Below, one piece after another: positions 40,985 through 63,315 of a DNA stretch of 64,000 nt. The translations under genes were made by a program, and so were the position numbers. Below the pieces are notes generated by a model, which did not search any database, was not told the origin of the DNA, and worked only from the letters and a program-made list of their open reading frames with translations. The stretch is from positions 62,001 through 126,000 of the IMG/VR virus record IMGVR_UViG_3300044712_001937. One strand, given 5' to 3'. The first letter of the stretch is position 1. Every line of letters starts with the position of its first letter.

Positions 40985-41135
40985 AAAAGTCATTGCTTAA
41001 TTATTAATTAAGTTAGGTCTGATAAAAGTCAGGAATGATTTTTAAATTTTATTGCCAGTTAGTGGTTATGTAAAATTTAAAAGACTTGACTATTGATAAT
41101 TGCATCAAAATTTAATTTCGATGCAATTATTTTTT
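40985..41135 (+). ncRNA. Putative small structured RNA with its own promoter and terminator
   Basis: TGAAAC-N16-CGTA at 40949-40974; three-way junction plus long hairpin; terminator ATAATTGCATC...GATGCAATTAT-T run. Confidence 0.55.
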
Positions 41136-41143
41136 AAAATAAA

Positions 41144-41174
41144 TTTGTATTTATAAAAAAAATAATTACATTTG
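41144..41174 (+). promoter_or_regulatory. Bacteroidota sigma-A promoter of tRNA cluster 1
   Basis: TTTG 41144-41147, 19 nt, TACATTTG 41167-41174. Confidence 0.75.
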
Positions 41175-41206
41175 TACCGAATAAGTATAACATAATAAAT
41201 ATTCAA

Positions 41207-41281
41207 ATGAAAAATTTAATACATATCCACCCCCAACCACAACAACATCCACAAATGTTGAATGGGGATAATATGGCTTAA
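41207..41281 (+). CDS. Attenuator leader peptide 1, MKNLIHIHPQPQQHPQMLNGDNMA (His/Pro/Gln-rich)
   Basis: Manual translation; lies between promoter and terminator; contains antiterminator segment TTGAATGGG. Confidence 0.8.
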   Translation: MKNLIHIHPQPQQHPQMLNGDNMA

Positions 41282-41313
41282 ATTTTTTAAAAAAGTTTTT
41301 AAGTTTAACATAT

Positions 41314-41348
41314 AAAAACCCATTCAGAGAAATTTGAATGGGTTTTTT
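41314..41348 (+). terminator. Conditional terminator of attenuator 1
   Basis: AAAAACCCATTCA-GAGAAATT-TGAATGGGTTTTTT. Confidence 0.85.
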
Positions 41349-41375
41349 ATTTTCAGGGATTGGGCGAGTTTAATA

Positions 41376-41386
41376 TGTTCTTTGAA
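41376..41386 (+). promoter_or_regulatory. boxA-like antitermination site
   Basis: TGTTCTTTGAA shortly after the terminator. Confidence 0.55.
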
Positions 41387-41464
41387 TTATCGAAATTGAG
41401 GTTATTTTTTTTATGTTAACTTAATTAATTTCGACATTAATTGTATTTATAATGAAAAATATAT

Positions 41465-42103
41465 ATGAATATTGAAAATTTAAAATTAATAATTGAAAAC
41501 AGTACTTCATTAAGTGAAGTTTGTAAGAAAATGAATATAAATAATAATGGTAACTCATTTAAAAAAATAAAAAAATTTATAAATGATGAAAGTATATCAA
41601 TATCTCATTTTAAGCGAAAATCAAAAAATATTTATAATGTTGATAAATTAAAATTATTAGTAAAAAATTCTACAACATATTCTGAAATATGTAGAGGGTT
41701 TAATATTAAAGAAACTGGTGGAAATATTAAAACAATTAAACAAAAAATTAATGAATCTAATATAGATATATCACATTTTAATGGTAAAGGTTGGAATAAA
41801 GGGAAAAGATATATTAATAATTTTAAAAAAAGTGAATTAAACAAAATATTAGTTGAAAATTCAACATATATTAATACGCATAAACTTAAATTAAGATTAA
41901 TTAAAGAAGGCTTACTTGAGCATAAATGCTATGGAGATAACTGTTGTATTATCAATATGTGGAATAATAAATTAATATCATTACAATTAGACCATATTAA
42001 TGGAAATAGAAGAGATAATAGAATTGAAAATCTTAGATTATTATGTCCTAATTGTCATTCACAAACTGAAACATATGGAGGTAAAAATAACGTAAAAAAA
42101 TAA
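41465..42103 (+). CDS. HNH homing endonuclease inserted ahead of tRNA cluster 1
   Basis: LQLDHINGNRRDNRIENLRLLCPNCHSQTETY; duplicated N-terminal repeat; late motif 41443-41451. Confidence 0.9.
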   Translation: MNIENLKLIIENSTSLSEVCKKMNINNNGNSFKKIKKFINDESISISHFKRKSKNIYNVDKLKLLVKNSTTYSEICRGFNIKETGGNIKTIKQKINESNIDISHFNGKGWNKGKRYINNFKKSELNKILVENSTYINTHKLKLRLIKEGLLEHKCYGDNCCIINMWNNKLISLQLDHINGNRRDNRIENLRLLCPNCHSQTETYGGKNNVKK

Positions 42104-42110
42104 TATATTT

Positions 42111-42185
42111 CTGGGTGTTCCACAGATGGATATATGGGCGTGCCTTGGAAGCACGTGTTCGTGAGTTCGAATCTCACCACTCAGA
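42111..42185 (+). tRNA. tRNA-Pro(UGG)
   Basis: Acceptor CTGGGTG/CACTCAG; CGTGC-CTTGGAA-GCACG; TTCGAAT T-loop. Confidence 0.85.
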
Positions 42186-42200
42186 CTAAATTGTTTTAAT

Positions 42201-42273
42201 GGTGTTTGAAGCATTAAGGTGATGTGCTTGACTGTGAATCAAGAGAAAACGGGTCAGTACCGTTCTTACACCC
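42201..42273 (+). tRNA. tRNA-His(GUG), atypical T-loop
   Basis: CTTGA-CTGTGAA-TCAAG; acceptor has mismatches; T-loop GTCAGTA. Confidence 0.7.
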
Positions 42274-42332
42274 AAATTATCGGTTAATTAACCTATAAAA
42301 TATATTTATAGGCATTTTAAAAGATAAAATTA

Positions 42333-42407
42333 CGGAATGTTGAGGAATTGGTTTCCCTCGCCTACCTTGGACGTAGGAGCATGTCGGTTCGAGTCCGGTC
42401 ATTCCGA
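42333..42407 (+). tRNA. tRNA-Pro(UGG)
   Basis: CGGAATG/CATTCCG; CCTAC-CTTGGAC-GTAGG. Confidence 0.88.
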
Positions 42408-42416
42408 CTATTAAAT

Positions 42417-42492
42417 CGAGTAATTGGGGAGTTGGTCACCCCGCCACATTTGGGATGTGGAGAACTCGCAGGTTCGAATCCTGCTTACTCGA
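42417..42492 (+). tRNA. tRNA-Pro(UGG)
   Basis: CGAGTAA/TTACTCG; CCACA-TTTGGGA-TGTGG. Confidence 0.88.
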
Positions 42493-42494
42493 CT

Positions 42495-42567
42495 GTATTA
42501 GTGGACTGTTGGTAGTCCGTCAAGATTGTGGCTCTTGCTGACGGGGGTTCGATTCCCCTCTAATACC
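42495..42567 (+). tRNA. tRNA-His(GUG)
   Basis: GTATTAG/CTAATAC, C discriminator; CAAGA-TTGTGGC-TCTTG. Confidence 0.85.
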
Positions 42568-42573
42568 CTAAAT

Positions 42574-42657
42574 TGTCCTTTGGTGGAATTGGTTTAAACA
42601 CAACTGTCTTTGAAGCAGTAACCTTCGGGTTTGCAGGTTCGAGTCCTGCAAGGACAA
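42574..42657 (+). tRNA. tRNA with Gln(UUG) anticodon and long variable arm
   Basis: TGTCCTT/AAGGACA; ACTGT-CTTTGAA-GCAGT; variable arm ACC-TTCG-GGT. Confidence 0.85.
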
Positions 42658-42664
42658 CTAAAAT

Positions 42665-42736
42665 TACTCAATAGTGTAATGGCTACCACACAACACTTTG
42701 ACTGTTGTAATTCTGGTTCGAGTCCAGATTGAGTAA
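42665..42736 (+). tRNA. tRNA-Gln(UUG)
   Basis: TACTCAA/TTGAGTA; CAACA-CTTTGAC-TGTTG. Confidence 0.88.
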
Positions 42737-42776
42737 CAATTTAAATAAAATTGCGTATATTACTAAAAAAACAATT

Positions 42777-43198
42777 ATGAATTATAATCTTTTCCTTGAT
42801 GATGTAAGAGAACCTGATGAAGTATTTGGATATACTAATAATCAGCTATATTTAATAGGTTGGAAAATAGTTCGAAATTATGATGAATTCATTAAATGTA
42901 TTTCTGAAAATGGAATTCCTAATGCTATTAGTTTTGACCATGATTTAGGACATGAACATTATAAAATACAAACCAATATTAGCTATAATCAATTTAAAGA
43001 AAAAACTGGTTTTCATTGCGCAAAATGGTTGATTGATTATTGTATTGTATTGATAATAAATTAGAACTTCCAAACACTATTTTAATACATTCATGGAATA
43101 AAGTGGGTAGTGCAAACATTAAGTCGTTATTTGATACATATAATAAAGTAAAAAATATTAACACTCCTAACAATTATCCACCAATACCTTATTCTTAA
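42777..43198 (+). pseudogene. Cyclic-phosphate-processing receiver-like protein, frameshifted by a TATTG x3 tract
   Basis: LFLDDVREP...ISFDHDLG...TGFHCAKWL; removing one TATTG unit (43038-43052) restores IDNKLELPNTILIHSWNKVGSANIKSLF. Confidence 0.7.
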
Positions 43199-44085: not shown

Positions 44086-44123
44086 TTTGTTTTTAATTGA
44101 AACTTTTTTACCTTTGTATCGTA
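44086..44123 (+). promoter_or_regulatory. Overlapping sigma-A and ECF-type promoters of tRNA cluster 2
   Basis: TTTG 44086-44089 + TACCTTTG 44109-44116; TGAAAC 44098-44103 + N16 + CGTA 44120-44123. Confidence 0.75.
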
Positions 44124-44159
44124 TTTAGTTTAAAACGCTATAACAATTAAAAAATAGAA

Positions 44160-44252
44160 ATGATGAAAAAAGTACTCGACATATTAGTAGCAGAAACATT
44201 AGTTGCCTTATTATGGGCAGTTGATGAAGATATGCTATGTTCAGTCGGGTAA
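44160..44252 (+). CDS. Attenuator leader peptide 2, MMKKVLDILVAETLVALLWAVDEDMLCSVG (V/L/A/D/E/W-rich)
   Basis: Manual translation; 3' end GTTCAGTCGGGT is a perfect 12-nt complement of the terminator 5' arm. Confidence 0.82.
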   Translation: MMKKVLDILVAETLVALLWAVDEDMLCSVG

Positions 44253-44280
44253 GTTTTATTACGATATAAAACAAGTTTTT

Positions 44281-44318
44281 AAAAAAACCCGACTGAACTA
44301 AAATCAGTCGGGTTTTTT
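44281..44318 (+). terminator. Conditional terminator of attenuator 2
   Basis: A7-CCCGACTGA-ACTAAAA-TCAGTCGGG-T6. Confidence 0.9.
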
Positions 44319-44325
44319 GTTTTTA

Positions 44326-44338
44326 TGTTCTTTGACAT
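44326..44338 (+). promoter_or_regulatory. boxA-like antitermination site
   Basis: TGTTCTTTGACAT between the terminator and the first tRNA. Confidence 0.65.
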
Positions 44339-44349
44339 GCTGGAATTTT

Positions 44350-44422
44350 CGAGGTCGTGGTGTAATGGTCTGCATAACACACTGTCACTGTGTCGGTTGG
44401 GGTTCGAGTCCCCCGGTCTCGG
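44350..44422 (+). tRNA. tRNA-Asp(GUC)
   Basis: CGAGGTC/GGTCTCG; ACACA-CTGTCAC-TGTGT; G discriminator. Confidence 0.85.
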
Positions 44423-44486
44423 CAATATCCTATCGGAAGGTAGGAGAAACTAAATTATTTAAATCCGGAATAGAATAATTTAGAAA

Positions 44487-44561
44487 GGACGTATAGTTTA
44501 TATGGGTGTGAATGCCACCGAGATGGGGTGGTGGTTGCTGGTTCAAATCCAGTTACGTCTG
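44487..44561 (+). tRNA. Atypical tRNA, nominal Ile(GAU), noncanonical anticodon loop
   Basis: GGACGTA/TACGTCT; CCACC-GAGATGG-GGTGG (no U33). Confidence 0.55.
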
Positions 44562-44567
44562 CAAAAT

Positions 44568-44643
44568 ATCACCATAGGGGAGTCTGGTCGTCCCTGCTTG
44601 CCTGTCACGCAAGAGAACACGGGTTCAAATCCCGTTGGTGGTG
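44568..44643 (+). tRNA. tRNA-Asp(GUC)
   Basis: ATCACCA/TGGTGGT; CTTGC-CTGTCAC-GCAAG. Confidence 0.85.
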
Positions 44644-44790
44644 CTAATACTTTACTGTCGAATTATATTAAGTTGATATAATTTATGAAGATAAGCGGAT
44701 TGGTGTAATAAACACATCTACCTTAAATAAGTAGAAACCTGTAACATGTGAAAGTTATCATCCGCAACAAGAAAGTAAAGTATTTATTAT

Positions 44791-44874
44791 CGTGCATTAT
44801 GCAAGCGGTCAAAGCGGCAAGTCCTTCAAACTTGTATCGAAAGATTTCGAGGGGTTCGAATCCCCCATGCATGA
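44791..44874 (+). tRNA. tRNA with Glu(UUC) anticodon and long variable arm
   Basis: CGTGCAT/ATGCATG; CAAGT-CCTTCAA-ACTTG (C33); variable arm ATC-GAAA-GAT. Confidence 0.75.
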
Positions 44875-45141
44875 CTTTAGTTATTTTCATTCAAAAGTGT
44901 AATACAATGCACTTTTGAATGAAAACACAATCATTAGTATCATATATGAGACTTTCAACAATAAATGTTGAATATTTCTATAAAATTTTAAGTTATTGTG
45001 GAAAATATACAACAAATTGAATAAAAGTTATTTATTTTCTACAATATATAATGTATGAAATAACCAACATTAGTAAAACGATGAAATTATATTCTAAACT
45101 AATAACCACTTAGCTTATAAGCATATTTTAAAAATTACGTA

Positions 45142-45426
45142 ATGTGTGAAATAACAAACATTATTTATATGGAAAACGAAATTTTAAAAAAAGAAATCCT
45201 TAAACTCCGGGAAGAAAATGAAGACCTTAAAAGTAAATTAATTGATTTAACTTTTGAACAAAATTATAGCATTGAAAAAGAATTAGCTGAAATTGTTCGA
45301 GAATTATATTCTGGTGTTTGTGAAGAATTAAAAAATAAAAAAAGTGAACTTACTAAAAAACAAATTTTAGAAAATATTAGAAATAATCTACAAGAATTTG
45401 CAAAAAACTATAAGTTTAAATTATAA
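45142..45426 (+). CDS. Hypothetical coiled-coil protein
   Basis: 94-aa ORF; probable start at MENEIL. Confidence 0.55.
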   Translation: MCEITNIIYMENEILKKEILKLREENEDLKSKLIDLTFEQNYSIEKELAEIVRELYSGVCEELKNKKSELTKKQILENIRNNLQEFAKNYKFKL

Positions 45427-45430
45427 AAAT

Positions 45431-45502
45431 GCTCGGTTGGTAAAGTGGCTAATACGTCTGACTTTCTATCAGGAGTCACGGGTTCGATTCCCGTACCGAG
45501 TA
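45431..45502 (+). tRNA. tRNA-Glu(UUC)
   Basis: GCTCGGT/ACCGAGT; TCTGA-CTTTCTA-TCAGG. Confidence 0.85.
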
Positions 45503-45576
45503 CAATTAGGTGTCTAAAGCATTAAAGACTTAAATTCGGTAAAAAGTTAAATAATTAAGCCATGCCTAATTAAATC

Positions 45577-45648
45577 AGTCTCTTAGCGTAGCGGAAGCGC
45601 ATCTGCCTTACATGCAGAGGGTCATAGGTTCGAATCCTATAGGGACTA
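45577..45648 (+). tRNA. tRNA-Val(UAC)
   Basis: AGTCTCT/AGGGACT; TCTGC-CTTACAT-GCAGA. Confidence 0.88.
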
Positions 45649-45766
45649 CAAATGTCTATCATAGCTGGGTAAAATCCCTTAAAGGAATACTGGAGTAACG
45701 ATAACCTAAGTGAAGTGGTATTATGCGAGATAGTTATAATGAAAAGTTGGTCACTCAGTAATTATA

Positions 45767-45841
45767 GGGTGAAAATGGTGTAAGTATGGGAGCACATCTG
45801 CATGAAAGCAGCAGGACGAAGTTCGAATCTTTAACACTCCA
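45767..45841 (+). pseudogene. Degenerate tRNA-like element
   Basis: D-like and TTCGAAT arms present, but 6-nt anticodon loop (ATGAAA) and poor acceptor pairing. Confidence 0.5.
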
Positions 45842-45846
45842 CAAAT

Positions 45847-45931
45847 TGGAAAATGGTGTAATGGCTAAACATCCCACTCTTACAAAGTGGAGACGAGAAG
45901 TATAATCCGAGTTCGAATCTCGGTTTTCCAA
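45847..45931 (+). tRNA. tRNA with Val(UAC) anticodon and long variable region
   Basis: TGGAAAA/TTTTCCA; CCACT-CTTACAA-AGTGG; 16-nt variable region. Confidence 0.8.
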
Positions 45932-45939
45932 CATAAAAT

Positions 45940-46020
45940 GTCCTCTTGGTGGAACGGTAGACACGATAGTTTTAGAAACTATTGCTGAAAGGTGTGAGAG
46001 TTCAAGTCTCTCAGAGGATA
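45940..46020 (+). tRNA. tRNA-Leu(UAG)
   Basis: GTCCTCT/AGAGGAT; ATAGT-TTTAGAA-ACTAT; class II arm. Confidence 0.88.
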
Positions 46021-46066
46021 CTAATATTTTATAATAATTAAAATAAACTTAATTCTTGCAAAAACA

Positions 46067-46732
46067 CTATTTATTTTTTATTATGTTAACAATAACGTTT
46101 AAATATTTTTTTGATGTTTGTTCTTTGAAATATTTTTGTTGTGATGTGTCAATAATGCATAATTCAATCCCTTGTTCTAAACAAGCTTGAAATTTTCTAT
46201 TATCATTATTTTGAATTTGTTGAAGTTTATTTTCGCCAAATATTGGTTCATAATGAAATAAACCATTTAACTCAAAAGCAAGTTTAAGTGAAGGAATATA
46301 AATATCTAATTCAGAATTTATTATATCTTTATTATTAAATAATATTTCTAAATCAGGATATAATAATTTTAATTGTCCTTCAAGATAAATTTCAAGTTTA
46401 GACCTACGATTACCTTTTGTTTTATGTGTATTATTATAAATTGCAGCACATGATTGTGAACAAAAATGATTGTTTGATTTTTTTATTTCACTATTAGGTT
46501 TTATAATTTCAATACCACAATTAATACAAGTAAAAATTGTACTATTATTGAAATATAGTGAACGACATTTTTTTGTACAAAAATTACCACGATTATATTT
46601 ATTTTCTTTTATATAATGTTTTATTCTCTTTTTTTGACATTGGAAAATATTATCACAATAGTGACATTTTAAATTCAAAAAATCATTTGATTTAGCTGTA
46701 TTAAATTCTTCTTTGGTAAATAATGGAATCAT
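46067..46732 (-). CDS. Zinc-finger plus PD-(D/E)XK/Vsr-like endonuclease inserted antisense in tRNA cluster 2 (start revised to MIPLFT)
   Basis: CxxC repeats; ELDIYIPSLKLAFELNGLFHY; late motif on the minus strand at 46755-46747. Confidence 0.75.
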   Translation of the reverse strand: MIPLFTKEEFNTAKSNDFLNLKCHYCDNIFQCQKKRIKHYIKENKYNRGNFCTKKCRSLYFNNSTIFTCINCGIEIIKPNSEIKKSNNHFCSQSCAAIYNNTHKTKGNRRSKLEIYLEGQLKLLYPDLEILFNNKDIINSELDIYIPSLKLAFELNGLFHYEPIFGENKLQQIQNNDNRKFQACLEQGIELCIIDTSQQKYFKEQTSKKYLNVIVNIIKNK

Positions 46733-46820
46733 AAGACTTAATTTATAATAAATACTATAAATTTTCATTTTCGATATAGTTTTTCGGGACAAAGTAAAAG
46801 AATTAATTAATAATATATAT

Positions 46821-46907
46821 GGCTTTGTGGCGAAATTGGCAGTACGCAACAGACTTAAAATCTGTGGTTCAGTAATGGACGTGTCGGTTCAAGTCCGACC
46901 AGAGCTA
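46821..46907 (+). tRNA. tRNA-Leu(UAA)
   Basis: GGCTTTG/CAGAGCT; ACAGA-CTTAAAA-TCTGT. Confidence 0.9.
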
Positions 46908-46975
46908 CGCTATTGAGTTTTACACTTTTAGATTTCCGTGAAGTTAGTTAATAACTGAGAAAGAAAAAGTGATAT

Positions 46976-47051
46976 GGGGTATGGGACTGCTAGGGTTGGT
47001 CATCTCGCTTGCACCGAGAAAATCAGGACGATTCGAATTCGTCATGCTCCA
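46976..47051 (+). tRNA. tRNA-Ala(UGC)
   Basis: GGGGTAT/ATGCTCC with G3:U70; TCTCG-CTTGCAC-CGAGA. Confidence 0.88.
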
Positions 47052-47112
47052 CTGAGACAGACTGTTAGAATTTTATAGAACCTGTTGCTGGGTAGCGTAA
47101 AAATTCGAATAT

Positions 47113-47187
47113 GGTTCTGTAGCCCAATTGGTAGAGGCATCAGATTTAAATTCTGTATAGGTGTGGGTTCGACTCCCACCATCCCTA
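47113..47187 (+). pseudogene. tRNA-like gene, nominal Leu(UAA), mismatched acceptor stem
   Basis: Good D and T arms, CAGA-TTTAAAT-TCTG; GGTTCTG does not pair well with CATCCCT. Confidence 0.55.
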
Positions 47188-47194
47188 CTAACAT

Positions 47195-47265
47195 ACATCT
47201 GTCGTCTAATGGTAAGATATCGGTTTCCAACTCCGAGGATAAGGTTTCGATTACTTTCAGGTGTG
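47195..47265 (+). tRNA. tRNA-Trp(CCA)
   Basis: ACATCTG/CAGGTGT, G discriminator; loop TTCCAAC. Confidence 0.75.
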
Positions 47266-47283
47266 CTAATTAATTATAAATAT

Positions 47284-47550
47284 ATGAGTAGTGAAGATGG
47301 TAGGTATCATATAACTGATATCAAAACAGGTAGAAAATTTTTAGTTGAACCAATTGGTAATCCCCATGTTAATTGGGGTGATGTAAACCCTGCAACAAAA
47401 AAATTAGAAGGGGATTATGGTGATAAATATCGAGGTTCAATCGATGAAAAAAATTCAATAATTACTGAACAAAATGGATTTAAAAATATTATTGTAGGAG
47501 AAATTGGTGAATCTCCAGTAGATTTGATGAATAAAATTTTAAATTCTTAA
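47284..47550 (+). CDS. Conserved phage hypothetical protein (start revised to MSSEDG)
   Basis: The upstream part of the track ORF overlaps tRNAs; ATG at 47284. Confidence 0.65.
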   Translation: MSSEDGRYHITDIKTGRKFLVEPIGNPHVNWGDVNPATKKLEGDYGDKYRGSIDEKNSIITEQNGFKNIIVGEIGESPVDLMNKILNS

Positions 47551-47652
47551 ATTGCCGAATATTACCGGATATTGCCGGAATAAAATAAATTAATACTGAA
47601 TATCAAGTATTTATATTTTTATTTTATTACCGGATATTACCGGAATAAAATA
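47551..47652. repeat. Five 10-bp ATTRCCG(G/A)A(T/A) repeats in two blocks
   Basis: Units at 47551, 47561, 47571, 47626, 47636; each block ends TAAAATA. Confidence 0.8.
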
Positions 47653-47730
47653 TTGCTTATTTTGGGTTGACGATAGTAAGTTCCAAACATTTAGGAATGA
47701 TATGAGGGTTCATTCATAAGCGCATCTAAT

Positions 47731-47813
47731 ACGTCCGTGACCGAGTGGTTAAAGGTGATAGTCTCCAAAACTATTTGCGAAAGCATACGTGGGTTCAAAT
47801 CCTACCGGGCGTG
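47731..47813 (+). tRNA. tRNA with Trp(CCA) anticodon and long variable arm
   Basis: ACGTCCG/CGGGCGT; ATAGT-CTCCAAA-ACTAT; arm TGC-GAAA-GCA. Confidence 0.85.
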
Positions 47814-47875
47814 CTTTAATTTATTAAAAATCAATAACTTATGAAAACGCAAAAAGCAATGAGCACCCTATTAGG

Positions 47876-49976: not shown

Positions 49977-49991
49977 GTTCTTTAACATAAT

Positions 49992-51638: not shown

Positions 51639-51724
51639 GGCGAAGTGATGGAACTGGTAGACATGCAGGACTTAAAATCCTGTGGTCAGTAATGACCGTG
51701 TGGGTTCGACTCCCATCTTCGCTA
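51639..51724 (+). tRNA. tRNA-Leu(UAA)
   Basis: GGCGAAG/CTTCGCT; CAGGA-CTTAAAA-TCCTG. Confidence 0.92.
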
Positions 51725-52021
51725 CAAATAAAATTTTAATAGTATTTATGAAAAATAAATTATCTGAACCACCAAAACCTCCTTTATGTAGGATAATAAG
51801 AGAAGGATGTACTCATTTTTGTAATAAATGTCATTCATCGACACCAAGAAGATGGGTTTTGATTGGTAAAAGATATTGTTTAAATCCTGATTGTCAAAAT
51901 TCATATGGCTATAAAGAAAAAGAGTAATAATGATTGTGGATGTGGTAAACCAGTTAAAGTTACTGACTCAAGTAATAAAAAAAGTAATTTTAAAAAAATT
52001 ATACCAAAAAAATGAAAAAAT

Positions 52022-52102
52022 GTTCTCGTGATGGAATGGTAGACTTGGCAGTTTCAAAAATTGTTGCTGAAAAGCGTGTGGGTTCGAGTCCCACCGGGAA
52101 TA
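52022..52102 (+). tRNA. tRNA-Leu(CAA)
   Basis: GTTCTCG/CGGGAAT; loop TTCAAAA; class II arm. Confidence 0.82.
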
Positions 52103-52185
52103 CAAAAATAAAATTTATTATTCTCAGTAAAGAAGAAGTTGAGAATGATAGAAGTAAAGCTTATAAATATTTAATTTAAATTTTT

Positions 52186-52428
52186 ATGAAAATTCACTAT
52201 AATCCATACGTTAATAATGATGAAGAAGATTATCCTGAATTTGCTTTATGTGGAACATTAATGCCTCAAGATGGTGGAAATGAAACTAATGATGAAAAAT
52301 TTGTGACATGTAAAAAATGTTTAAAATCAATAAAAAAAATTAATAATTGGAGAGATGAAACTGAAAAATATATATTAAATGATATGCAAGGTTTCGTTGA
52401 TTTTCAAAATAAAAATAATTTAATATGA
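52186..52428 (+). CDS. Small zinc-binding protein
   Basis: ALCG...VTCKKC. Confidence 0.55.
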   Translation: MKIHYNPYVNNDEEDYPEFALCGTLMPQDGGNETNDEKFVTCKKCLKSIKKINNWRDETEKYILNDMQGFVDFQNKNNLI

Positions 52429-52477
52429 AAAAAATCTTTGAATTCTTGTAGGTACGCTCTAATGCGACCACAAGAAT

Positions 52478-52780
52478 ATGGGTGGATTAAAAGAAATTGT
52501 AAAATCAACCACAAATCGTGGTGAGTTCAATCGTGCATATAAAATGCATTTAGAACATTCCGGAAAAATTCATTGTTCCAGATGTGGTTATCATCGTGGT
52601 GAAAACGAAGATAATAATTATTATGGAGGTTATAAAAAAACTAATGGTCATTGGAGTATAACATACCCAAATTGGAAATTAGTATCTAAACAACCAAAAC
52701 AATGGATGAAAAAACCAATCAATATTGTGTATGAAACAAGACACAATCGTGAATATGTTGAGATTAAATTCTCAACATAA
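52478..52780 (+). CDS. Hypothetical protein
   Basis: 100-aa ORF with CSRC motif. Confidence 0.55.
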   Translation: MGGLKEIVKSTTNRGEFNRAYKMHLEHSGKIHCSRCGYHRGENEDNNYYGGYKKTNGHWSITYPNWKLVSKQPKQWMKKPINIVYETRHNREYVEIKFST

Positions 52781-52784
52781 ACAT

Positions 52785-52855
52785 TGCGATATCGTCTAAT
52801 GGTAGGACACCTCTCTCATAAGGAGTGAATTGCAGTTCGATTCTGCATATCGCAA
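52785..52855 (+). tRNA. tRNA-Met/Ile2(CAU)
   Basis: TGCGATA/TATCGCA; loop CTCATAA. Confidence 0.82.
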
Positions 52856-52879
52856 CAACATTCCAGCATGTTAAAACAA

Positions 52880-54730: not shown

Positions 54731-54788
54731 ATTATGAAAATTTTGGGGTAATTTTACATTACTTGGTATTTATAATAAAATATTGATT

Positions 54789-55559
54789 ATGAGTATTGGT
54801 ATATATAAAATTACAAATCCTAAAGGAAAAATTTATATTGGACAAAGTATAAATCTTGAAAAAAGAATTAATGATTATAAATATTTGAATTATTCAAAAA
54901 ATCAATATAAATTATATAATTCATTTCAAAAATATGGTATTGATTCACATATTTTTGAAATAATAGAAATTTGTGAAATTCATAATTTAAACAATAGAGA
55001 AAGATATTGGCAGGATTTTTATGATGTTTTACATAATGGTCTTAATTTAATATTAACGACCAATGATAATTGTTTACCAATTGTTTCTAAAGAAACTAAA
55101 GAAAAAATAAAAAAAAGTCTTAATAATTATTTTATTAAATTAGGTACTTTAAAAAGAAATGAAATTTATGGAAAAAGCAGTCGTAAACGAAAAGGATGTA
55201 TAGGATTAAAAGGACGTGTTATTTCTGATGAAACTAAAAGAAAAATAAGTATTGCAAAAAAAGGACATATAGTTTCTGACGATACTAAACTAAAAATTAA
55301 AAACAAAATGATTGGTAGAGAAATTTCATGGAGTAAAAAAATTGGTGATAGTAATCGTGGAAAAAGTAAAAATAAAGGAAAACACTGTAAACCAATAATT
55401 CAATTAAATAAAAATGGAGAAATTTTAAATAAATGGAAAAGTATTTCTCAAGCATCAATTGAAACAAAAATTCCATTTAATTCAATATCTAATTGTTTAA
55501 CTGGTTATTGTAAAACATCAAGAGGTTTTATTTGGAAATATGATAATAATATAGAATAA
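54789..55559 (+). CDS. GIY-YIG homing endonuclease with NUMOD repeats
   Basis: MSIGIYKITNPKGKIYIGQS; NUMOD3-like SDETKRKIS; GFIWKY; late motif 54766-54774. Confidence 0.9.
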   Translation: MSIGIYKITNPKGKIYIGQSINLEKRINDYKYLNYSKNQYKLYNSFQKYGIDSHIFEIIEICEIHNLNNRERYWQDFYDVLHNGLNLILTTNDNCLPIVSKETKEKIKKSLNNYFIKLGTLKRNEIYGKSSRKRKGCIGLKGRVISDETKRKISIAKKGHIVSDDTKLKIKNKMIGREISWSKKIGDSNRGKSKNKGKHCKPIIQLNKNGEILNKWKSISQASIETKIPFNSISNCLTGYCKTSRGFIWKYDNNIE

Positions 55560-56608
55560 TGAATAAAGAATTAAATATATTGCATGAACAAGGTTTATTG
55601 CAAAAACAAGTTCATCCTAATTATAAATTAATTATTTGGAATTATACTCCAAAAGTTAGTTATGAAAAATTATGGAAAACTAATGATTTATTATTAAAAT
55701 GTCGAGGTTTAGTGACTGATTTTCAAGGAAATATAATTGCTAATTGTATTCCTAAATTCTTTAACTATGAAGAATTAAATTATAATGATATTCCTAACGA
55801 ACCTTTTGAATTTACAGATAAAATGGATGGTTCTTATATTAATTTTTTTAATTATAATGGTAATTGGATTTTTTCCTCACGAGGTTCATTTTCATCAGAA
55901 CAAGCTATATTAGCTAATAAAATATTTAATGAAAAATATTTTAATAAAGTAATATTAAATCCAGAATATAATTATATTATGGAATTAATAGGAATTGATA
56001 ACAGAATTGTTATTTATTACCCTAATAATGATTTAGTTTTATTAACTTGTTTTTCAAAAGAAAATAAAGAAATTAATATATATTCTGAAGAATTTAATGG
56101 GTTTAATAAGGTTAAAAAATATGATGGAATAATTGATTATAAAAAAATAAAAGCATTAATTTCTGACGATACTGAAGGATATGTTATTCGTTTTAAAAAT
56201 GGATTTAGAATGAAAATTAAAGGAGATGAATATTGTAGATTACATTCGATAATAACTAATGTTTCGAATATTGTAATTTGGAAACATATGAAAGATGGTT
56301 TACCTTTTGAAGAATTGCTTGATAGAGTTCCGGATGAATTTTATAATTGGGTACTTAAAACTAAAAATGAATTAGAAGATAATTATTATGCCATTGAATG
56401 TCCATTATTAAAAGAATTTGTAGAAATATATTATTTTAATGGTAGTTATAATCGCACAAAATTTGCTAAAGCAGTTTTAGAATCTAAATCTAAACATAAA
56501 TCTATATTATTCTCCTTATTTGATAATAAAAAATATAATCAAGTAATTTGGAAAGCAATTAGACCTACATTTAGTAAGCCATTTCGAGATGGTTATGATA
56601 CGGATTAA
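55559..56608 (+). CDS. T4 Rnl1-family RNA ligase
   Basis: CRGLV...IPKFFNY, KMDGS (motif I), ELIG, EGYVIRF, MKIKGDEY. Confidence 0.85.
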   Translation: MNKELNILHEQGLLQKQVHPNYKLIIWNYTPKVSYEKLWKTNDLLLKCRGLVTDFQGNIIANCIPKFFNYEELNYNDIPNEPFEFTDKMDGSYINFFNYNGNWIFSSRGSFSSEQAILANKIFNEKYFNKVILNPEYNYIMELIGIDNRIVIYYPNNDLVLLTCFSKENKEINIYSEEFNGFNKVKKYDGIIDYKKIKALISDDTEGYVIRFKNGFRMKIKGDEYCRLHSIITNVSNIVIWKHMKDGLPFEELLDRVPDEFYNWVLKTKNELEDNYYAIECPLLKEFVEIYYFNGSYNRTKFAKAVLESKSKHKSILFSLFDNKKYNQVIWKAIRPTFSKPFRDGYDTD

Positions 56609-57490: not shown

Positions 57491-57533
57491 TGTAACTTTT
57501 TTTTGGAAGTCTCGTATTTATATCATATATTTG
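57491..57533 (+). promoter_or_regulatory. Overlapping ECF-type and sigma-A promoters of tRNA cluster 3
   Basis: TGTAAC 57491-57496 + N16 + CGTA 57513-57516; TTTG 57502-57505 + TATATTTG 57526-57533. Confidence 0.75.
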
Positions 57534-57619
57534 CAGAGTGAATTTAATGAATTCTGTATTTGACTGTTTTGAATGGCGAGGGTCATTAAATTTAATAACA
57601 AAATAAACAATATAAAGAA

Positions 57620-57709
57620 ATGAGAACATTTGGTACATATTATTACGGTAAAAAATCCTATAAACACCTTATAGGATTCGGGAATTCTATGTCCAAAATG
57701 CAAAGATAA
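57620..57709 (+). CDS. Attenuator leader peptide 3, MRTFGTYYYGKKSYKHLIGFGNSMSKMQR (Tyr/Lys-rich)
   Basis: Manual translation; contains GGATTCGGG complementary to the terminator 5' arm and an 8-bp protector hairpin. Confidence 0.8.
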   Translation: MRTFGTYYYGKKSYKHLIGFGNSMSKMQR

Positions 57710-57736
57710 CAGCAATGATTTTTGCGTAATGAACTG

Positions 57737-57766
57737 AAACCCGAATTCGAAAGATTCGGGTTTTTT
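57737..57766 (+). terminator. Conditional terminator of attenuator 3
   Basis: AAACCCGAAT-TCGAAAG-ATTCGGG-T6. Confidence 0.88.
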
Positions 57767-57780
57767 GTTTTTATATAAAT

Positions 57781-57863
57781 TGTGTAGATGGTAAATTGGC
57801 TAAATCAGAGGCTTGTAACACCTTCGTCATTCGACTATGTAGGTTCGATTCCTACCTGCACAA
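57781..57863 (+). tRNA. tRNA-Tyr(GUA)
   Basis: TGTGTAG/CTGCACA; loop TTGTAAC; class II arm. Confidence 0.8.
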
Positions 57864-57870
57864 CAAATTT

Positions 57871-57943
57871 GACTTCGTGGCGCAATTGGTAGCGCAATAG
57901 GCTTTTAACCTATGGGTTGGGGATTCGACTTCCCCCGGAGTCA
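57871..57943 (+). tRNA. tRNA-Lys(UUU)
   Basis: GACTTCG/CGGAGTC; ATAGG-CTTTTAA-CCTAT. Confidence 0.88.
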
Positions 57944-58003
57944 CGGTAGGAAGACTGTTATAATTTCATAGTTCCAAGTAATGGAAAGCATAGAAATTAA
58001 ATT

Positions 58004-58087
58004 GGGAGTGCGCTAACGCTGGAGAGTTAGGTTTGTCTGTAAAACAAATGTCTTTCGGCTGAGTGGGTTCGAATCCCACTACTCCCA
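58004..58087 (+). tRNA. tRNA-Tyr(GUA)
   Basis: GGGAGTG/TACTCCC; TTTGT-CTGTAAA-ACAAA. Confidence 0.88.
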
Positions 58088-58153
58088 CAAATTTAATATT
58101 AAAATAGGTGTATTATACCTATGTTTAATAGTATTTATATTAAATTTAATATT

Positions 58154-58549
58154 ATGTTTGAAAATTGTAAAAATTCAAAAAAACAAGGTGATTTAGGATT
58201 AGGAAAAGCAATTGGATGGTTAACAGAATGTGGTTATACTGTTTCTATACCATTAACTGATTCACAAGATTATGATTTGATTGTTGATATGGATAATAAA
58301 TTAAATAAAGTTCAAGTTAAAACAACCAGATATAAAAATAAAAATGGAATTTTTTGTGTTAATTTATCAGTTAAAGGAGGCAATCAAAGTAGTAATACAA
58401 TAAAAAAATTTGATGCTAATTTTACTGATTATGTTTATGTTTATACATCGAATAATGAAATGTATTTTATTCCGTCATGTGAAATAAAAACAAAAAATAA
58501 TTTAAATATTGGTAAATTATTTTCAAAATATAAAATAATGACTTCGTAA
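58154..58549 (+). CDS. PD-(D/E)XK homing-endonuclease-like protein within tRNA cluster 3 (start revised)
   Basis: KKQGDLG...PLTDSQDYDLIVD...KVQVKT; GTATTTATA at 58131-58139. Confidence 0.82.
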   Translation: MFENCKNSKKQGDLGLGKAIGWLTECGYTVSIPLTDSQDYDLIVDMDNKLNKVQVKTTRYKNKNGIFCVNLSVKGGNQSSNTIKKFDANFTDYVYVYTSNNEMYFIPSCEIKTKNNLNIGKLFSKYKIMTS

Positions 58550-58612
58550 CTTAATTGGTAGAGTACCACTCTCTTAAAGTGGGAGTTGTGGGTTCAAATC
58601 CCACCGAAGTCA
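58540..58612 (+). tRNA. tRNA-Lys(CUU)
   Basis: GACTTCG/CGAAGTC; CCACT-CTCTTAA-AGTGG. Confidence 0.9.
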
Positions 58613-58696
58613 CTAACTGAACTTAGCAAATGGAGTTCTGTCAACCATCAAGCATGATTAAATCGTAGGAGGGGGAGAGTTTAAAATTTGCAATAT

Positions 58697-58783
58697 GACC
58701 TTGTAGCTCAACTGGATAGAGCTTCTGGCTTTTAACCAGAAGGGAGCGTAATGCCGTTGTGGGTTCGAGTCCCACCGGGGTCA
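58697..58783 (+). tRNA. tRNA with Lys(UUU) anticodon and long variable arm
   Basis: GACCTTG/CGGGGTC; TCTGG-CTTTTAA-CCAGA; 18-nt variable region. Confidence 0.85.
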
Positions 58784-58790
58784 CAAAATT

Positions 58791-60930: not shown

Positions 60931-63315
60931 ATGAATAAAACTATTAATGGTTATAAACTATTATCTGATTTTAAATTTCAATCTAATTATAGTAAATTTA
61001 ATGAAAATTTAAGTAGAAAAGAAAGTTGGAGTGAAAGTGTAGATAGAGTTTTTAATGAAATGCATGAAATTAAATTTAAAAAAATTTTAGAATCCAATCC
61101 TAAATTTAAAGAATATTATGATTTTGCAATAAAAAGATATAAAGATAAAAAAGTTTTAGGTTCTCAAAGAGCACTCCAATTTGGAGGTACGCCAATATTA
61201 AAACATAATGCTAAAATATTTAATTGTACAGTATCTTATTGTGATAGAATTGAATTCTTTCAAGAAGCAATGTATATGTTATTATGTGGATGTGGCGTTG
61301 GATTTAGTGTACAAAATAAACATATTGATAAACTACCTACAATAAAAAAAAGAAGTAATAAATCTAAAGTATTTGAAATAGAAGATTCTATTGAAGGTTG
61401 GAGTGATGCAATCGGAGTATTATTATCAAGTTATTTTGATGGAAATGTACCTTTTTCTAAATATCAAAATTGTCATGTAAATTTTGATTATAGTAATATT
61501 AGACCTAAAGGTTCATATATTAGTGGAGGATTTAAAGCTCCCGGACATGAAGGTTTAAGAAATTCTATTCAAAAAATAGAAGAATTATTGGAAAAGGAAT
61601 TAGATAAACAAAACTTTAATGGGAAAATTGAATCAATAATTGCATATGATATAGTTATGCATATGTCAGATGCTGTTTTATCTGGTGGTGTCAGAAGAAG
61701 TGCAACTATTTGTCTATTTAGCCCTAATGATAATAAAATGTTAAATGCTAAAACAGGTAATTGGTTTATTGAAAATCCTCAAAGAGCAAGAAGTAATAAT
61801 TCAGTTTTATTAAATAAAAATACTTTAACTAAAGAAGAATTTAATCATTTTTTTAAATATACTAAACAATTTGGAGAACCGGGTTTTGGTTTTACTACCA
61901 ATGAAGATATTATATTTAACCCTTGTTTTGAAATTGGAATGTATCCTCAAACTGAGGAAGGAATTTCAGGTTGGGAATGTTGTAACTTAGTTGAAATAAA
62001 TGGAAATTCTTGTATTAATGAAGAAGAATTTTATGATAATTGTAAAGCTGCTGCATTTATTGCTACATTACAAGCAACATATACTGATTTTAAATATTTA
62101 AAACCTGAAAGTAAAAAAATATGTGATAGAGAAGCGTTATTAGGTGTAAGTATTACAGGTTTTATGAACAATCCACAAATATTATTAAATCCAGATATTC
62201 AAAAAAAAGGTGCTAAAATAGTTAAAGAAATAAATAAAGAAGTTGCTGAAATGATTGGTATTAATCAAGCAGCAAGAACTACTTGTGTTAAACCTTCAGG
62301 TAATGCATCTACATTATTAGGTACTGCATCAGGAATTCATGGTGAACATTTTAGAAGATATTTTAGAAACGTTCAAGTTAATAAGGATGATGATATAGGC
62401 ATTTATTTGAAAAAAATAAATCCTAAAATGTTTGAAAATTCAGTTTGGAGTGCAAATAATACCGATTGGGTAATTTCTTTTCCTATTGAAGCTAATGTTA
62501 ATAGTATATTTAAAGATGAATTAGTAGGAACTAAATTATTGGAATATGTTAAATTAACTCAACAAAATTGGGTTGAAGAAGGAACTAATGTTGATTTGTG
62601 TATTGAAAAATCAATTAGACATAATGTAAGTAATACTATTATCGTAGATAATTGGGAAGAAATTGAAAATTACATTTTTGAAAATAAACAATGGTTTTCA
62701 GGAATAAGTTTATTACCAATGACAGGAGATAAAGATTATAATCAAGCACCATTTACTTCAATTTTAACATCAAAAGAATTAGTGAAAAAATATGGAGATA
62801 TTGCAATGTATGCATCAGGATTGATTGTTGATGGTTTAAATGCATTTAATAATAATTTGTGGTTAGCTTGTGATATTCTAAATGGACTCGGTGAAAAAAT
62901 TGAATATAATGAAGAAGATGTAAAAAATGAATTAATGAAATTAACTCCAAGAGAAGCTTGGAGTAATTTAGGTTTTAAAAACGGAACGTTAGATATTCTT
63001 TCAAAAACATTTATTAAACCAGAAGTTGAAGAATATAAAAGATATATGGATTCAACATTAATAGGTAGTGTACATAATTATGCATTAAAAAAAGATTGGA
63101 TTCGTAGAGCTAAACAATTTTCTGAACGATATTTTAAATCAATCAAAGAAATGACTTATTGCTTAAAAGATGTTAATAATTATCATAAATGGATTGAAAT
63201 TAATAGAGAATTGAAAGATGTTGATTGGGAAAATATAGTTGTGAAACCTAAATATACAGATATTGATACTACAGGAGCAGTTGCTTGTAGTGGTGGTGCT
63301 TGTGAATTAACATAA
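60931..63315 (+). CDS. nrdJ: Ribonucleotide reductase, probably class II (B12-dependent, monomeric type)
   Basis: FNC, RRSA, NPCFEI, CCNLVE, TCVKPSGN and C-terminal CSGGACEL; no small-subunit gene adjacent. Confidence 0.85.
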   Translation: MNKTINGYKLLSDFKFQSNYSKFNENLSRKESWSESVDRVFNEMHEIKFKKILESNPKFKEYYDFAIKRYKDKKVLGSQRALQFGGTPILKHNAKIFNCTVSYCDRIEFFQEAMYMLLCGCGVGFSVQNKHIDKLPTIKKRSNKSKVFEIEDSIEGWSDAIGVLLSSYFDGNVPFSKYQNCHVNFDYSNIRPKGSYISGGFKAPGHEGLRNSIQKIEELLEKELDKQNFNGKIESIIAYDIVMHMSDAVLSGGVRRSATICLFSPNDNKMLNAKTGNWFIENPQRARSNNSVLLNKNTLTKEEFNHFFKYTKQFGEPGFGFTTNEDIIFNPCFEIGMYPQTEEGISGWECCNLVEINGNSCINEEEFYDNCKAAAFIATLQATYTDFKYLKPESKKICDREALLGVSITGFMNNPQILLNPDIQKKGAKIVKEINKEVAEMIGINQAARTTCVKPSGNASTLLGTASGIHGEHFRRYFRNVQVNKDDDIGIYLKKINPKMFENSVWSANNTDWVISFPIEANVNSIFKDELVGTKLLEYVKLTQQNWVEEGTNVDLCIEKSIRHNVSNTIIVDNWEEIENYIFENKQWFSGISLLPMTGDKDYNQAPFTSILTSKELVKKYGDIAMYASGLIVDGLNAFNNNLWLACDILNGLGEKIEYNEEDVKNELMKLTPREAWSNLGFKNGTLDILSKTFIKPEVEEYKRYMDSTLIGSVHNYALKKDWIRRAKQFSERYFKSIKEMTYCLKDVNNYHKWIEINRELKDVDWENIVVKPKYTDIDTTGAVACSGGACELT

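Follow-up and report, generated by a model that had tools for sequence, protein, structure and literature searches.

Leader-peptide attenuators are well known from the amino-acid biosynthetic operons of proteobacteria (trpL, hisL, pheL, leuL, thrL, ilvL; modelled in PMC1183508), where a short translated leader contains a run of regulatory codons, four RNA segments form protector, antiterminator and terminator, and the position of the ribosome decides between termination and read-through; some of these leaders, such as thrL and ilvL, sense several amino acids. The locus described here appears to share this layout, its protector being predicted by folding, but the genes downstream are tRNA genes rather than enzymes, suggesting that the output feeds directly back on the sensed quantity. 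Additionally, the element is viral, it is preceded by a Bacteroidota-type promoter, a single genome holds a set of such switches that partitions the tRNA repertoire, and there is no sequence similarity to any Rfam leader family. T-box riboswitches (RF00230) are likewise transcription attenuators that monitor the state of a specific tRNA and control translation-related genes, but they bind uncharged tRNA directly through a specifier codon, need no ribosome or ORF, and control synthetases, transporters and biosynthesis rather than tRNA genes; no T-box match was found here. Phage tRNA genes themselves have been linked to tRNA-targeting defences, with T5 tRNA-Tyr acting against retron-Eco7 PtuAB, phage-expressed tRNA-Lys against PrrC170, and T5 tRNA-Lys against PARIS (PMC11555353, PMC11464382, PMC10264068), such that phage-encoded tRNAs replace host tRNAs depleted during infection. 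In T5 the tRNA-Tyr is overexpressed from a strong promoter (PMC11555353), whereas in the present phage expression appears to be conditional on ribosome stalling at the matching codons.

The analysed window is a 64-kb stretch (positions 62,001 to 126,000) of a 365-kb, 27% GC jumbo phage (IMG/VR UViG_3300044712_001937), and its relevant features are collected in Table 1. A first-pass annotation had interpreted the locus as a His/Pro/Gln leader controlling seven tRNA genes that read its control codons, with a protector hairpin overlapping an antiterminator that a terminating ribosome would mask and a stalled ribosome would leave free. Every sequence statement in that annotation was confirmed against the window, and its interpretation is supported at the sequence level, although the regulation itself is inferred rather than measured. 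The annotation did not mention the HNH endonuclease ORF lying between the terminator and the first intact tRNA gene, nor the stump of a destroyed tRNA-Pro gene.

Table 1. Features of the His/Pro/Gln attenuator locus and its two sister loci (window coordinates)
Feature	Position	Strand	Description
Promoter, Bacteroidota sigma-A type	41144..41174	+	-33 TTTG (41144-41147), 19-nt spacer, -7 TACATTTG (41167-41174); ends 32 nt before the leader ATG
Leader ORF	41207..41281	+	24 codons, MKNLIHIHPQPQQHPQMLNGDNMA; control codons 41222-41254 (residues 6-16, HIHPQPQQHPQ, 10 of 11 H/P/Q); stop codon at 41279
Region 1 (protector arm)	41231..41248	+	Inside the control codons; C-run CCCCA (41231-41235) and CAACA/CAACAT (41240-41248); predicted to pair with region 2
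Protector hairpin	41243-41248 and 41255-41260	+	CAACAT and ATGTTG
Region 2 (antiterminator 5' arm)	41256..41267	+	Core TTGAATGGG at 41258-41266, copying the 3' arm of the terminator; 12 nt between this segment and the stop codon
Intrinsic terminator	41314..41349	+	15-pair stem and 4-nt loop (GAAA) at 41314-41347; region 3 CCCATTCAG (41319-41327) in the 5' arm; region 4 TTGAATGGG (41334-41342) in the 3' arm; T run 41343-41348
tRNA-Pro stump	41354..41370	+	First 17 nt of a gene destroyed by the HNH insertion
GTTCTTTGA motif	41377..41385	+	Left end of the insert
HNH homing-endonuclease ORF	41465..42103	+	212 aa; PF13392, PF01844
Seven tRNA genes	42111..42737	+	Pro-TGG 42111-42186, His-GTG 42202-42272, Pro-TGG 42333-42408, Pro-TGG 42417-42493, His-GTG 42495-42568, Gln-TTG 42574-42658 (85 nt, long variable arm), Gln-TTG 42665-42737
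Sister attenuator 2	44086..44318	+	Promoter 44086-44116; leader 44160-44252 (MMKKVLDILVAETLVALLWAVDEDMLCSVG); antiterminator TCAGTCGGGT at 44241; terminator 44282-44318; followed by Asp, Asp, Glu, Glu, Val, Val, Leu, Leu, Ala, Trp, Trp tRNAs (44350-47814)
Sister attenuator 3	57502..57764	+	Promoter 57502-57533; leader 57620-57709 (MRTFGTYYYGKKSYKHLIGFGNSMSKMQR); antiterminator GATTCGGG at 57675; terminator 57736-57764; followed by Tyr, Lys, Tyr, Lys, Lys tRNAs (57781-58784)

Region 2 and region 3 can form 9 pairs, one of them G-U, and the leader-terminator RNA folds with z = -5.5 against shuffles. H/P/Q make up 10 of 23 leader residues, compared with 8.0% in the long ORFs of the phage (binomial p = 4e-6). 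The promoter consensus is as cited in PMC7366714; only 8 full matches occur on the + strand of the window, 3 of which sit in front of the 3 leaders, and in relatives the motif is present before 12/15, 17/19, 20/24 and 3/3 leaders of attenuators 1, 2, 3 and 4, respectively. No other TAnnTTTG was found on the + strand between 41175 and 42928, and no terminator-like site was found on the + strand between 41349 and 44282. Of the seven tRNA genes, six were called by ARAGORN, whereas the first His-GTG gene was found only by Rfam. In a close relative (L016), which is identical to the window up to 41370 and then diverges, the HNH gene is absent and an intact 96-nt tRNA-Pro starts 6 nt after the T run, showing the original position of the terminator; in the present phage the 764-nt insert, whose HNH gene is similar to those of many phages, separates the switch from the tRNAs. 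Within the window only tRNA and tmRNA passed the Rfam gathering thresholds, and in a permissive scan of 41100-41420 the best hits reached 21 bits or less against thresholds of 54 or more, all of them terminator-like.

Sixteen distinct homologues that keep the H/P/Q leader were recovered from related 330-365-kb phages whose neighbouring proteins are only 45-55% identical. The variation of the leader follows a coding pattern, with third-position entropy of 0.79 against 0.32 and 0.24 for positions 1 and 2, and with indels of 3 or 6 nt in the control-codon part. The C-terminal part in the window is read in another frame than in relatives, yet it keeps the same RNA segment and the same stop codon, and GAAYGGGG in region 2 is invariant in position in all 16 homologues. 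The antiterminator helix is paired in 98.4% of cells (slid controls give 13-61%), and the terminator, which is the RNAalifold consensus, is paired in 94.5% of cells, with 3 pairs showing changes on both sides. In three homologues (L110, L128 and L129) a U-A pair is changed to C-G, the A-to-G change in region 3 being compensated in both region 2 and region 4.

Folding with a modelled 30-nt ribosome mask reproduced the expected switch. A stall on codons 1-14 lets the antiterminator form, whereas a ribosome at codon 15 or later, or at the stop, masks region 2; the expected stalled and stop states were obtained in 16/16 homologues each, and without a ribosome region 2 is sequestered by upstream pairing in 15/16. 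The protector is predicted by folding, but it has no covariation support, as the arm is constrained by the codons: the CCCC:GGGG pairing is possible in 85% of cells, and the C-run is created by the rare codons CAC and CCC (7% and 4% usage). The full-length RNA always prefers the terminator thermodynamically, so the switch must be kinetic. A long helix closing the leader from the start-codon to the stop-codon region, seen in the minimum free energy fold of the window, is not supported in relatives (67% paired, no better than a slid control).

The same architecture occurs three times in the window and a fourth time in relatives, and each leader is enriched only in the amino acids of its own tRNA cluster, with counts of 10/23 for P/H/Q, 20/29 for DEVLAW (p = 3e-5), 8/28 for K/Y (p = 0.03) and 31/43 for TCNFSRGI (p = 3e-4); all off-diagonal comparisons are non-significant. 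The link between codons and tRNAs also co-varies in one relative (L117), in which an Arg-ACG tRNA accompanies a CGC codon in leader 1, and the absence of a Val tRNA accompanies the absence of Val control codons in leader 2. Downstream of the ribonucleotide reductase gene, where relatives have the fourth attenuator, no tRNA lies within 10 kb in this phage. No such leaders were detected in more distant phages with mixed tRNA arrays (L046, L061, L135), although the detection thresholds were tuned on the present family and this is weak negative evidence. Searches of IMG/VR with the 626-aa neighbour and a degenerate HPQPQQHPQ pattern returned only the contig itself, and the cupin gene led to seven loci, none with tRNAs. 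Among INPHARED phages no relative was found at the DNA or protein level, the nearest being a 595-kb uncultured huge phage at 49% identity for one protein. A scan of GTDB genomes with a leader/region-2 pattern, which was too loose, gave no host assignment, as it sits on a 5.9-kb contig binned with an Anaerolinea MAG and probably mis-binned.

Combined, these results suggest, with good but not complete confidence, that the locus is a ribosome-mediated transcription attenuator gating the His/Pro/Gln tRNA gene cluster, although there is no experimental or transcriptomic evidence and neither the host nor whether it couples transcription with translation is known. In the proposed sequence of events, host RNA polymerase starts at the Bacteroidota-type promoter and transcribes the leader. 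If a ribosome reads quickly through the H/P/Q codons it reaches the end of the ORF and covers region 2, and if no ribosome loads, region 2 is held by the C-rich control codons; in both cases the terminator forms and transcription stops. If the ribosome stalls because decodable His, Pro or Gln tRNA is scarce, region 1 is covered, region 2 stays free and pairs with the 5' arm of the terminator as soon as that arm is made, and the polymerase reads on into the tRNA genes, in this phage first crossing the inserted HNH gene. The result would be a negative-feedback supply circuit in which the phage makes exactly those tRNAs whose shortage is slowing ribosomes. That termination responds to translation, the direction of the response, and tRNA supply as the physiological signal are inferences. 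Leader-peptide attenuation has been reported as likely in flavobacteria (PMC9723704), but no description of attenuator-controlled tRNA genes was found in the literature searched, and this would be the first attenuator known to control tRNA genes.

Of the alternatives, the one that survives best, though unlikely, retains the mechanism but takes amino-acid starvation as the signal, as in biosynthetic operons, so that the phage would adjust tRNA output to the nutritional state of the cell. Any A-site vacancy gives the same stall, so the sequence cannot tell the two signals apart, and classical attenuators respond to charged-tRNA shortage (PMC1183508). However, making more tRNA does not relieve a lack of amino acid, the grouping by tRNA identity and the co-variation of leader codons with tRNA gene content fit a tRNA-supply sensor better, and neighbouring RNA-repair genes point to tRNA damage as the relevant stress. 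Less likely still, the short ORF and terminator could be a self-contained unit or the end of an upstream transcript, with the tRNA genes transcribed from their own downstream start site and the codon match having no regulatory meaning. A conserved GTTCTTTRA motif, possibly a promoter-like box or a processing signal, lies 5-20 nt upstream of the tmRNA gene and of other tRNA genes; it precedes the first tRNA after attenuator 2 in 17/19 relatives and after attenuator 1 in 6/15, and occurs in the window as GTTCTTTGA. If the motif is a promoter, the tRNAs in this phage could be expressed independently of the attenuator. It lacks the TA of the -7 box and has no -33 partner, however, and in relatives the terminator is 1-28 nt from the first tRNA, leaving no room for a separate promoter; in L016, L110 and all attenuator 3 copies whose first tRNA lies within 7-22 nt of the terminator, there is neither the motif nor such room. 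A conserved, covarying antiterminator would also have no purpose without regulated read-through, and four leader classes each match their own cluster. A functional small protein with incidental RNA structures is very unlikely: the N-terminal MKNL motif and PQ-rich core are conserved, but the C-terminal third is frame-shifted in the window while its nucleotides and stop position are kept, the conserved EWG/ERG residues follow the RNA pairing, and the four peptides share only the architecture. Chance coincidence in AT-rich DNA, suggested by the C/A-rich low-complexity control tract, is rejected by the leader composition, the fold score, the conservation and covariation in 16 homologues, and the three parallel classes.

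Phage tRNA genes have been debated for fifty years, as codon compensation or as counter-defence, and are usually treated as constitutively expressed cargo, whereas here they appear to be under demand-driven feedback through the oldest known RNA switch, with the regulated product being the very molecule sensed. The sequence logic, in which leader composition predicts downstream tRNA content, could be used to annotate such switches in other viral genomes, and the elements would supply compact, portable codon-specific sensors for Bacteroidota and a natural example of a multiplexed sensor of translational capacity. A broader reading, possible but tentative, is that the phage carries a modular, codon-resolved sensor array in which each of three to four leader peptides reports the decoding capacity for one subset of codons and switches on only the matching replacement tRNAs. 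The phage could thereby detect and answer host tRNA depletion as it happens, whether caused by anticodon-nuclease defences aimed at Lys, Tyr and other tRNAs or by its own AT-rich codon demand; in this reading the Lys/Tyr switch, which lies close to a T4 Rnl1-type RNA ligase, is an inducible counter-defence. The family of uncultured jumbo phages concerned is large and widespread, as the neighbouring protease gene has thousands of close homologues in metagenomes.

The 64-kb window, positions 62001-126000 of the IMG/VR contig UViG_3300044712_001937 (364,702 bp), has a GC content of 26.8% and encodes portal, terminase, major head protein, an endolysin domain and ribonucleotide reductase. It also holds 25 tRNA genes called by ARAGORN, 3 more found only by Rfam, and a tmRNA gene; it is therefore an uncultured jumbo phage, and it has no relative in the INPHARED collection. 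The first-pass annotation had proposed a leader-peptide attenuator sensing His, Pro and Gln codons ahead of seven cognate tRNA genes, and every coordinate that it gave was found to be correct. Two segments within the leader can form a protector hairpin, and region 2, being a copy of the 3' arm of the terminator, can therefore pair with the 5' arm. The terminator is strong, with 15 pairs, a GAAA loop and six T, and the start coordinate of the finding is the -33 TTTG of a Bacteroidota-type promoter (consensus as quoted in PMC7366714). Seven tRNA genes follow (Pro, His, Pro, Pro, His, Gln, Gln), one of the His genes being detected only by Rfam. The residues H/P/Q make up 8.0% of the phage's long ORFs but 10 of 23 in the leader (p = 4e-6), and the region folds far better than shuffles (z = -5.5). 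The positions of these and other features are collected in the table.

Features of the attenuators and the surrounding tRNA region (positions in the window unless a locus such as L016 or the contig is named)
Feature	Position	Strand	Sequence or remark
Attenuator 1, promoter (-33 TTTG)	41144		TTTG-N19-TACATTTG
Attenuator 1, leader ORF	41207-41281		MKNLIHIHPQPQQHPQMLNGDNMA
Attenuator 1, protector hairpin	41243-41248 and 41255-41260		CAACAT with ATGTTG
Attenuator 1, region 2	41258-41266		TTGAATGGG
Attenuator 1, terminator 5' arm (region 3)	41319-41327		CCCATTCAG
Attenuator 1, terminator 3' arm (region 4)	41334-41342
tRNA-Pro stump	41354-41370
GTTCTTTRA motif	41377-41385, 44327-44335, 46120-46128, 49977-49985		also in many relatives
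HNH endonuclease ORF	41465-42103
cREC_REC (cyclic-phosphate processing receiver) protein	42777-43064
Attenuator 2, promoter	44086-44116
Attenuator 2, leader	44160-44252		MMKKVLDILVAETLVALLWAVDEDMLCSVG
Attenuator 2, spacer	44253-44281
Attenuator 2, terminator	44282-44318
tRNA-like genes seen only by Rfam	44487-44561 and 47113-47187
Protein of 245 aa	48960-49697
Leu(TAA), Leu(CAA), Met(CAT) group	51639-52856
T4 Rnl1-type RNA ligase	55559-56608
Attenuator 3, promoter	57502-57533
Attenuator 3, leader	57620-57709		MRTFGTYYYGKKSYKHLIGFGNSMSKMQR
Attenuator 3, terminator	57736-57764
Homing-endonuclease-type and zinc-finger ORFs other than the HNH ORF	54783-55559, 58121-58549
Same group	46067-46849	-
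Long tRNAs for Gln, Glu, Val, Trp and Lys	42574-42658, 44791-44875, 45847-45932, 47731-47814, 58697-58784
Long tRNA-Pro of relative L016	L016 3217-3312	-
First tRNA after the attenuator 1 terminator in relative L128	L128 3617-3880		appears interrupted
Region downstream of ribonucleotide reductase	L257 12383-22382 (contig 125313-135312)		no tRNA genes

The first-pass annotation missed that the terminator and the first intact tRNA are 764 nt apart, with the gap holding an HNH endonuclease ORF. A close relative from an ENA metagenome, L016, has the identical leader peptide but no HNH gene, and there a 96-nt tRNA-Pro starts 6 nt after the T run. The window matches L016 exactly to the end of the 17 nt following the terminator that are listed as a stump and then diverges, so this segment is what remains of that tRNA, and the HNH gene is thus a recent insertion into the first tRNA of the cluster. 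The ancestral layout is promoter, leader, terminator and tRNAs, with no room for another promoter. Between 41175 and 42928 there is no other TAnnTTTG box on the + strand, and no terminator-like site was found on that strand before 44282. Additionally, homing-endonuclease-type ORFs (HNH, GIY-YIG with NUMOD, PD-(D/E)XK) and a zinc-finger ORF are scattered through the tRNA region, and the relatives L118, L127 and L101 have inserts similar to the HNH insert at the same place. In another relative, L128, the first tRNA after the attenuator 1 terminator appears to be interrupted by an insert of about 200 nt with acceptor halves recognisable at both ends, suggesting that it may be an intron.

Two more units with the same architecture lie in the window. 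Attenuator 2 is followed by Asp, Asp, Glu, Glu, Val, Val, Leu, Leu, Ala, Trp and Trp tRNAs, and attenuator 3 by Tyr, Lys, Tyr, Lys and Lys tRNAs; in each, the last codons of the leader contain a copy of the terminator's 3' arm. Relatives carry a fourth class, as in the relative L025, where the leader MKRIAYILVSSLTTTSRIGEGTFCSDFGRNNIADTGSGFINLKR precedes Thr, Cys, Asn, Phe, Ser, Phe, Arg, Phe, Gly, Ile and Asn tRNAs. Each leader is enriched only in the amino acids of its own cluster, and every cross-comparison is non-significant. This phage has no tRNA genes within 10 kb downstream of its ribonucleotide reductase gene (locus L257), where relatives carry the fourth attenuator and the Thr/Cys/Asn/Phe/Ser/Arg/Gly/Ile cluster.

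Homologues of the C1 peptidase gene next to attenuator 3 number in the thousands. An alignment of these, together with one of the 245-aa protein, retrieved about 120 loci from IMG/VR, many of which come from 327-365-kb contigs. Across this family the tRNA genes are always grouped as Pro/His/Gln, Asp/Glu/Val/Leu/Ala/Trp, Leu/Leu/Met and Lys/Tyr. A scripted search for a terminator, an upstream ORF and an antiterminator found attenuator 1 in 16 distinct sequences, attenuator 2 in about 19 and attenuator 3 in about 18. In the three Pro/His/Gln clusters without a detected attenuator 1 (L118, L127 and L132), the locus ends or an endonuclease-type ORF fills the upstream sequence. The promoter motif precedes most leaders by 20-45 nt. 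In contrast, the Leu(TAA), Leu(CAA), Met(CAT) group, although conserved in the whole family, has no detectable leader-terminator unit and follows protein-coding genes directly.

In the alignment of the 16 attenuator 1 sequences, the antiterminator helix forms a standard pair in 98.4% of cells, against 13-61% when partners are slid, and the terminator helix does so in 94.5%. In the relatives L110, L128 and L129 the A of region 3 is G, and both of its partners, the T in region 2 and the T in region 4, are C; one change is thus compensated in two alternative helices. Region 2 (GAAYGGGG) is read as Glu-Trp-Gly or Glu-Arg-Gly in relatives but as (Leu)-Asn-Gly in the window, owing to a one-base deletion before it and a one-base insertion after it, while the nucleotides and the stop codon stay in place. 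The RNA is therefore what is conserved there, not the peptide. Analogous compensations were seen in the other two attenuators. In attenuator 2, TGGTCGAGA occurs with TCTCGACCA in the relative L100, against CAGTCGGG with CCCGACTG elsewhere. In attenuator 3, GATTCGGG occurs with CCCGAATTC in the window, against GAATCGGG with CCCGATTC elsewhere, and its protector helix has TCCTATAA with TTATAGGA in the window, against TTCTATAA with TTATAGAA in the relative L014. In most relatives, the spacer between the stop codon of leader 2 and its terminator also holds a conserved CCTCCTTTCTT (alignment A5 of relatives of this segment, columns about 140-150), which is the same as the anti-Shine-Dalgarno tail of 16S rRNA, although the window's own copy lacks it.

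The pattern of variation indicates that the leader is translated. Up to the end of the control codons, third codon positions vary much more than first and second positions (entropy 0.79 against 0.32 and 0.24), and indels in the control-codon part are 3 or 6 nt, whereas the spacer has indels of any length. The control codons vary synonymously or among H, P and Q. The phage itself uses CAA (96%), CAT (93%) and CCA/CCT (45% each), and the two rare codons in the leader, CAC and CCC, create the C-run that pairs with the GGGG of region 2.

To model the switch, ViennaRNA folding was run with a 30-nt stretch made unpairable to mimic a ribosome. With no ribosome, the nascent RNA up to region 3 pairs region 2 with the control-codon region in 15 of 16 homologues, and no antiterminator formed. 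With the A site on any codon up to the His of PQPQQH (codon 14 in the window), 6-9 antiterminator pairs form in all 16, whereas with the A site on codon 15 or later, or on the stop codon, region 2 is covered and no antiterminator forms in any of them. The protector pairing itself has no covariation support, and a long helix closing the whole ORF, seen in the window's fold, is not conserved. The complete RNA always prefers the terminator, so the choice must be made kinetically during transcription, as in classical attenuators.

The content of leader and cluster also co-varies in one relative, L117, in which the first gene after the terminator of attenuator 1 is tRNA-Arg (ACG), and that leader alone has an Arg codon (CGC) at the head of the control run. 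The same phage has no tRNA-Val in cluster 2, as checked with both ARAGORN and Rfam, and its leader 2 alone has no Val among the control codons. These are single cases, but they point the way the hypothesis predicts.

Combined, these sequence-based results support the interpretation put forward in the first-pass annotation, and the mechanism as stated is considered likely, although it is inferred rather than measured. A stall on His, Pro or Gln codons most likely reports that decodable tRNA for those codons is short; read-through would then produce exactly those tRNAs, with termination resuming once supply is restored. Extra tRNA cannot cure a lack of amino acid, so tRNA supply is more likely the relevant signal than amino-acid shortage. 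Supply could fall because of the phage's extreme A/T-ending codon demand or because host tRNAs are lost during infection, alternatives that the sequence alone does not separate. The genomic context fits tRNA damage as a theme: the T4 Rnl1-type RNA ligase lies two genes upstream of the Lys/Tyr attenuator, conserved in synteny with the C1 peptidase in relatives, and the cREC_REC protein lies directly after the Pro/His/Gln cluster, both suggesting tRNA repair. Speculatively, this may be linked to the fact that Lys and Tyr tRNAs are the known targets of PARIS, PrrC and retron-Eco7 PtuAB, which T5-like phages counter with their own tRNAs (PMC11464382, PMC11555353, PMC10264068).

A less likely alternative is that these tRNAs are expressed independently of the attenuator. 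The conserved motif GTTCTTTRA lies 5-20 nt upstream of the 5' end of the tmRNA gene, of the first tRNA after attenuator 2 in 17 of 19 relatives, where it extends to GTTCTTTGACATGYTGGAAATTT, and of some attenuator 1 clusters, as well as at the left end of the HNH insert in the window. In several cases an inserted ORF or an intron-bearing tRNA follows it directly, and it could be a promoter-like box, a processing signal or a homing site. If it is a start site, it would give attenuator-independent expression, in this phage possibly of the HNH gene and all seven tRNAs. However, it is absent where the terminator abuts the tRNA (L016, L110 and the attenuator 3 copies whose first tRNA follows within about 20 nt), so it cannot replace the attenuator model in general.

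The element is inferred to work like the trp, his, phe, leu, thr and ilv leader-peptide attenuators and meets their structural definition, apart from the protector pairing, which is only predicted by folding, but it matches none of the curated Rfam leader families, nor the T-box. It differs in that it appears to control tRNA genes, lies in a virus, and comes as a set of switches that divides the tRNA repertoire by amino acid; full-text literature searches found no report of attenuator-controlled tRNA genes or of such leaders in phages. A Bacteroidota host is inferred only from the promoter motif, the one genome-collection hit being a short contig binned with an Anaerolinea MAG. Leader-peptide attenuation as such is considered likely in flavobacteria and Bacteroides (PMC9723704, PMC7366714).

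The tRNA genes themselves showed some unusual forms. The tRNAs for Gln, Glu, Val, Trp and Lys (and Pro in L016) listed as long in the table are 84-96 nt, and each sits near a normal-length gene with the same anticodon, possibly reflecting escape from nucleases or different identity rules. For Gln, Glu and Trp the fold shows a hairpin in the variable region, like class II tRNAs, whereas Val and Lys did not fold that way. Of the two tRNA-like genes seen only by Rfam, one has an unusual anticodon loop, and ARAGORN calls undetermined ('???') tRNAs among the cluster-2 genes of several relatives; the other is a 75-nt tRNA with a UAA (Leu) anticodon but no long variable arm.
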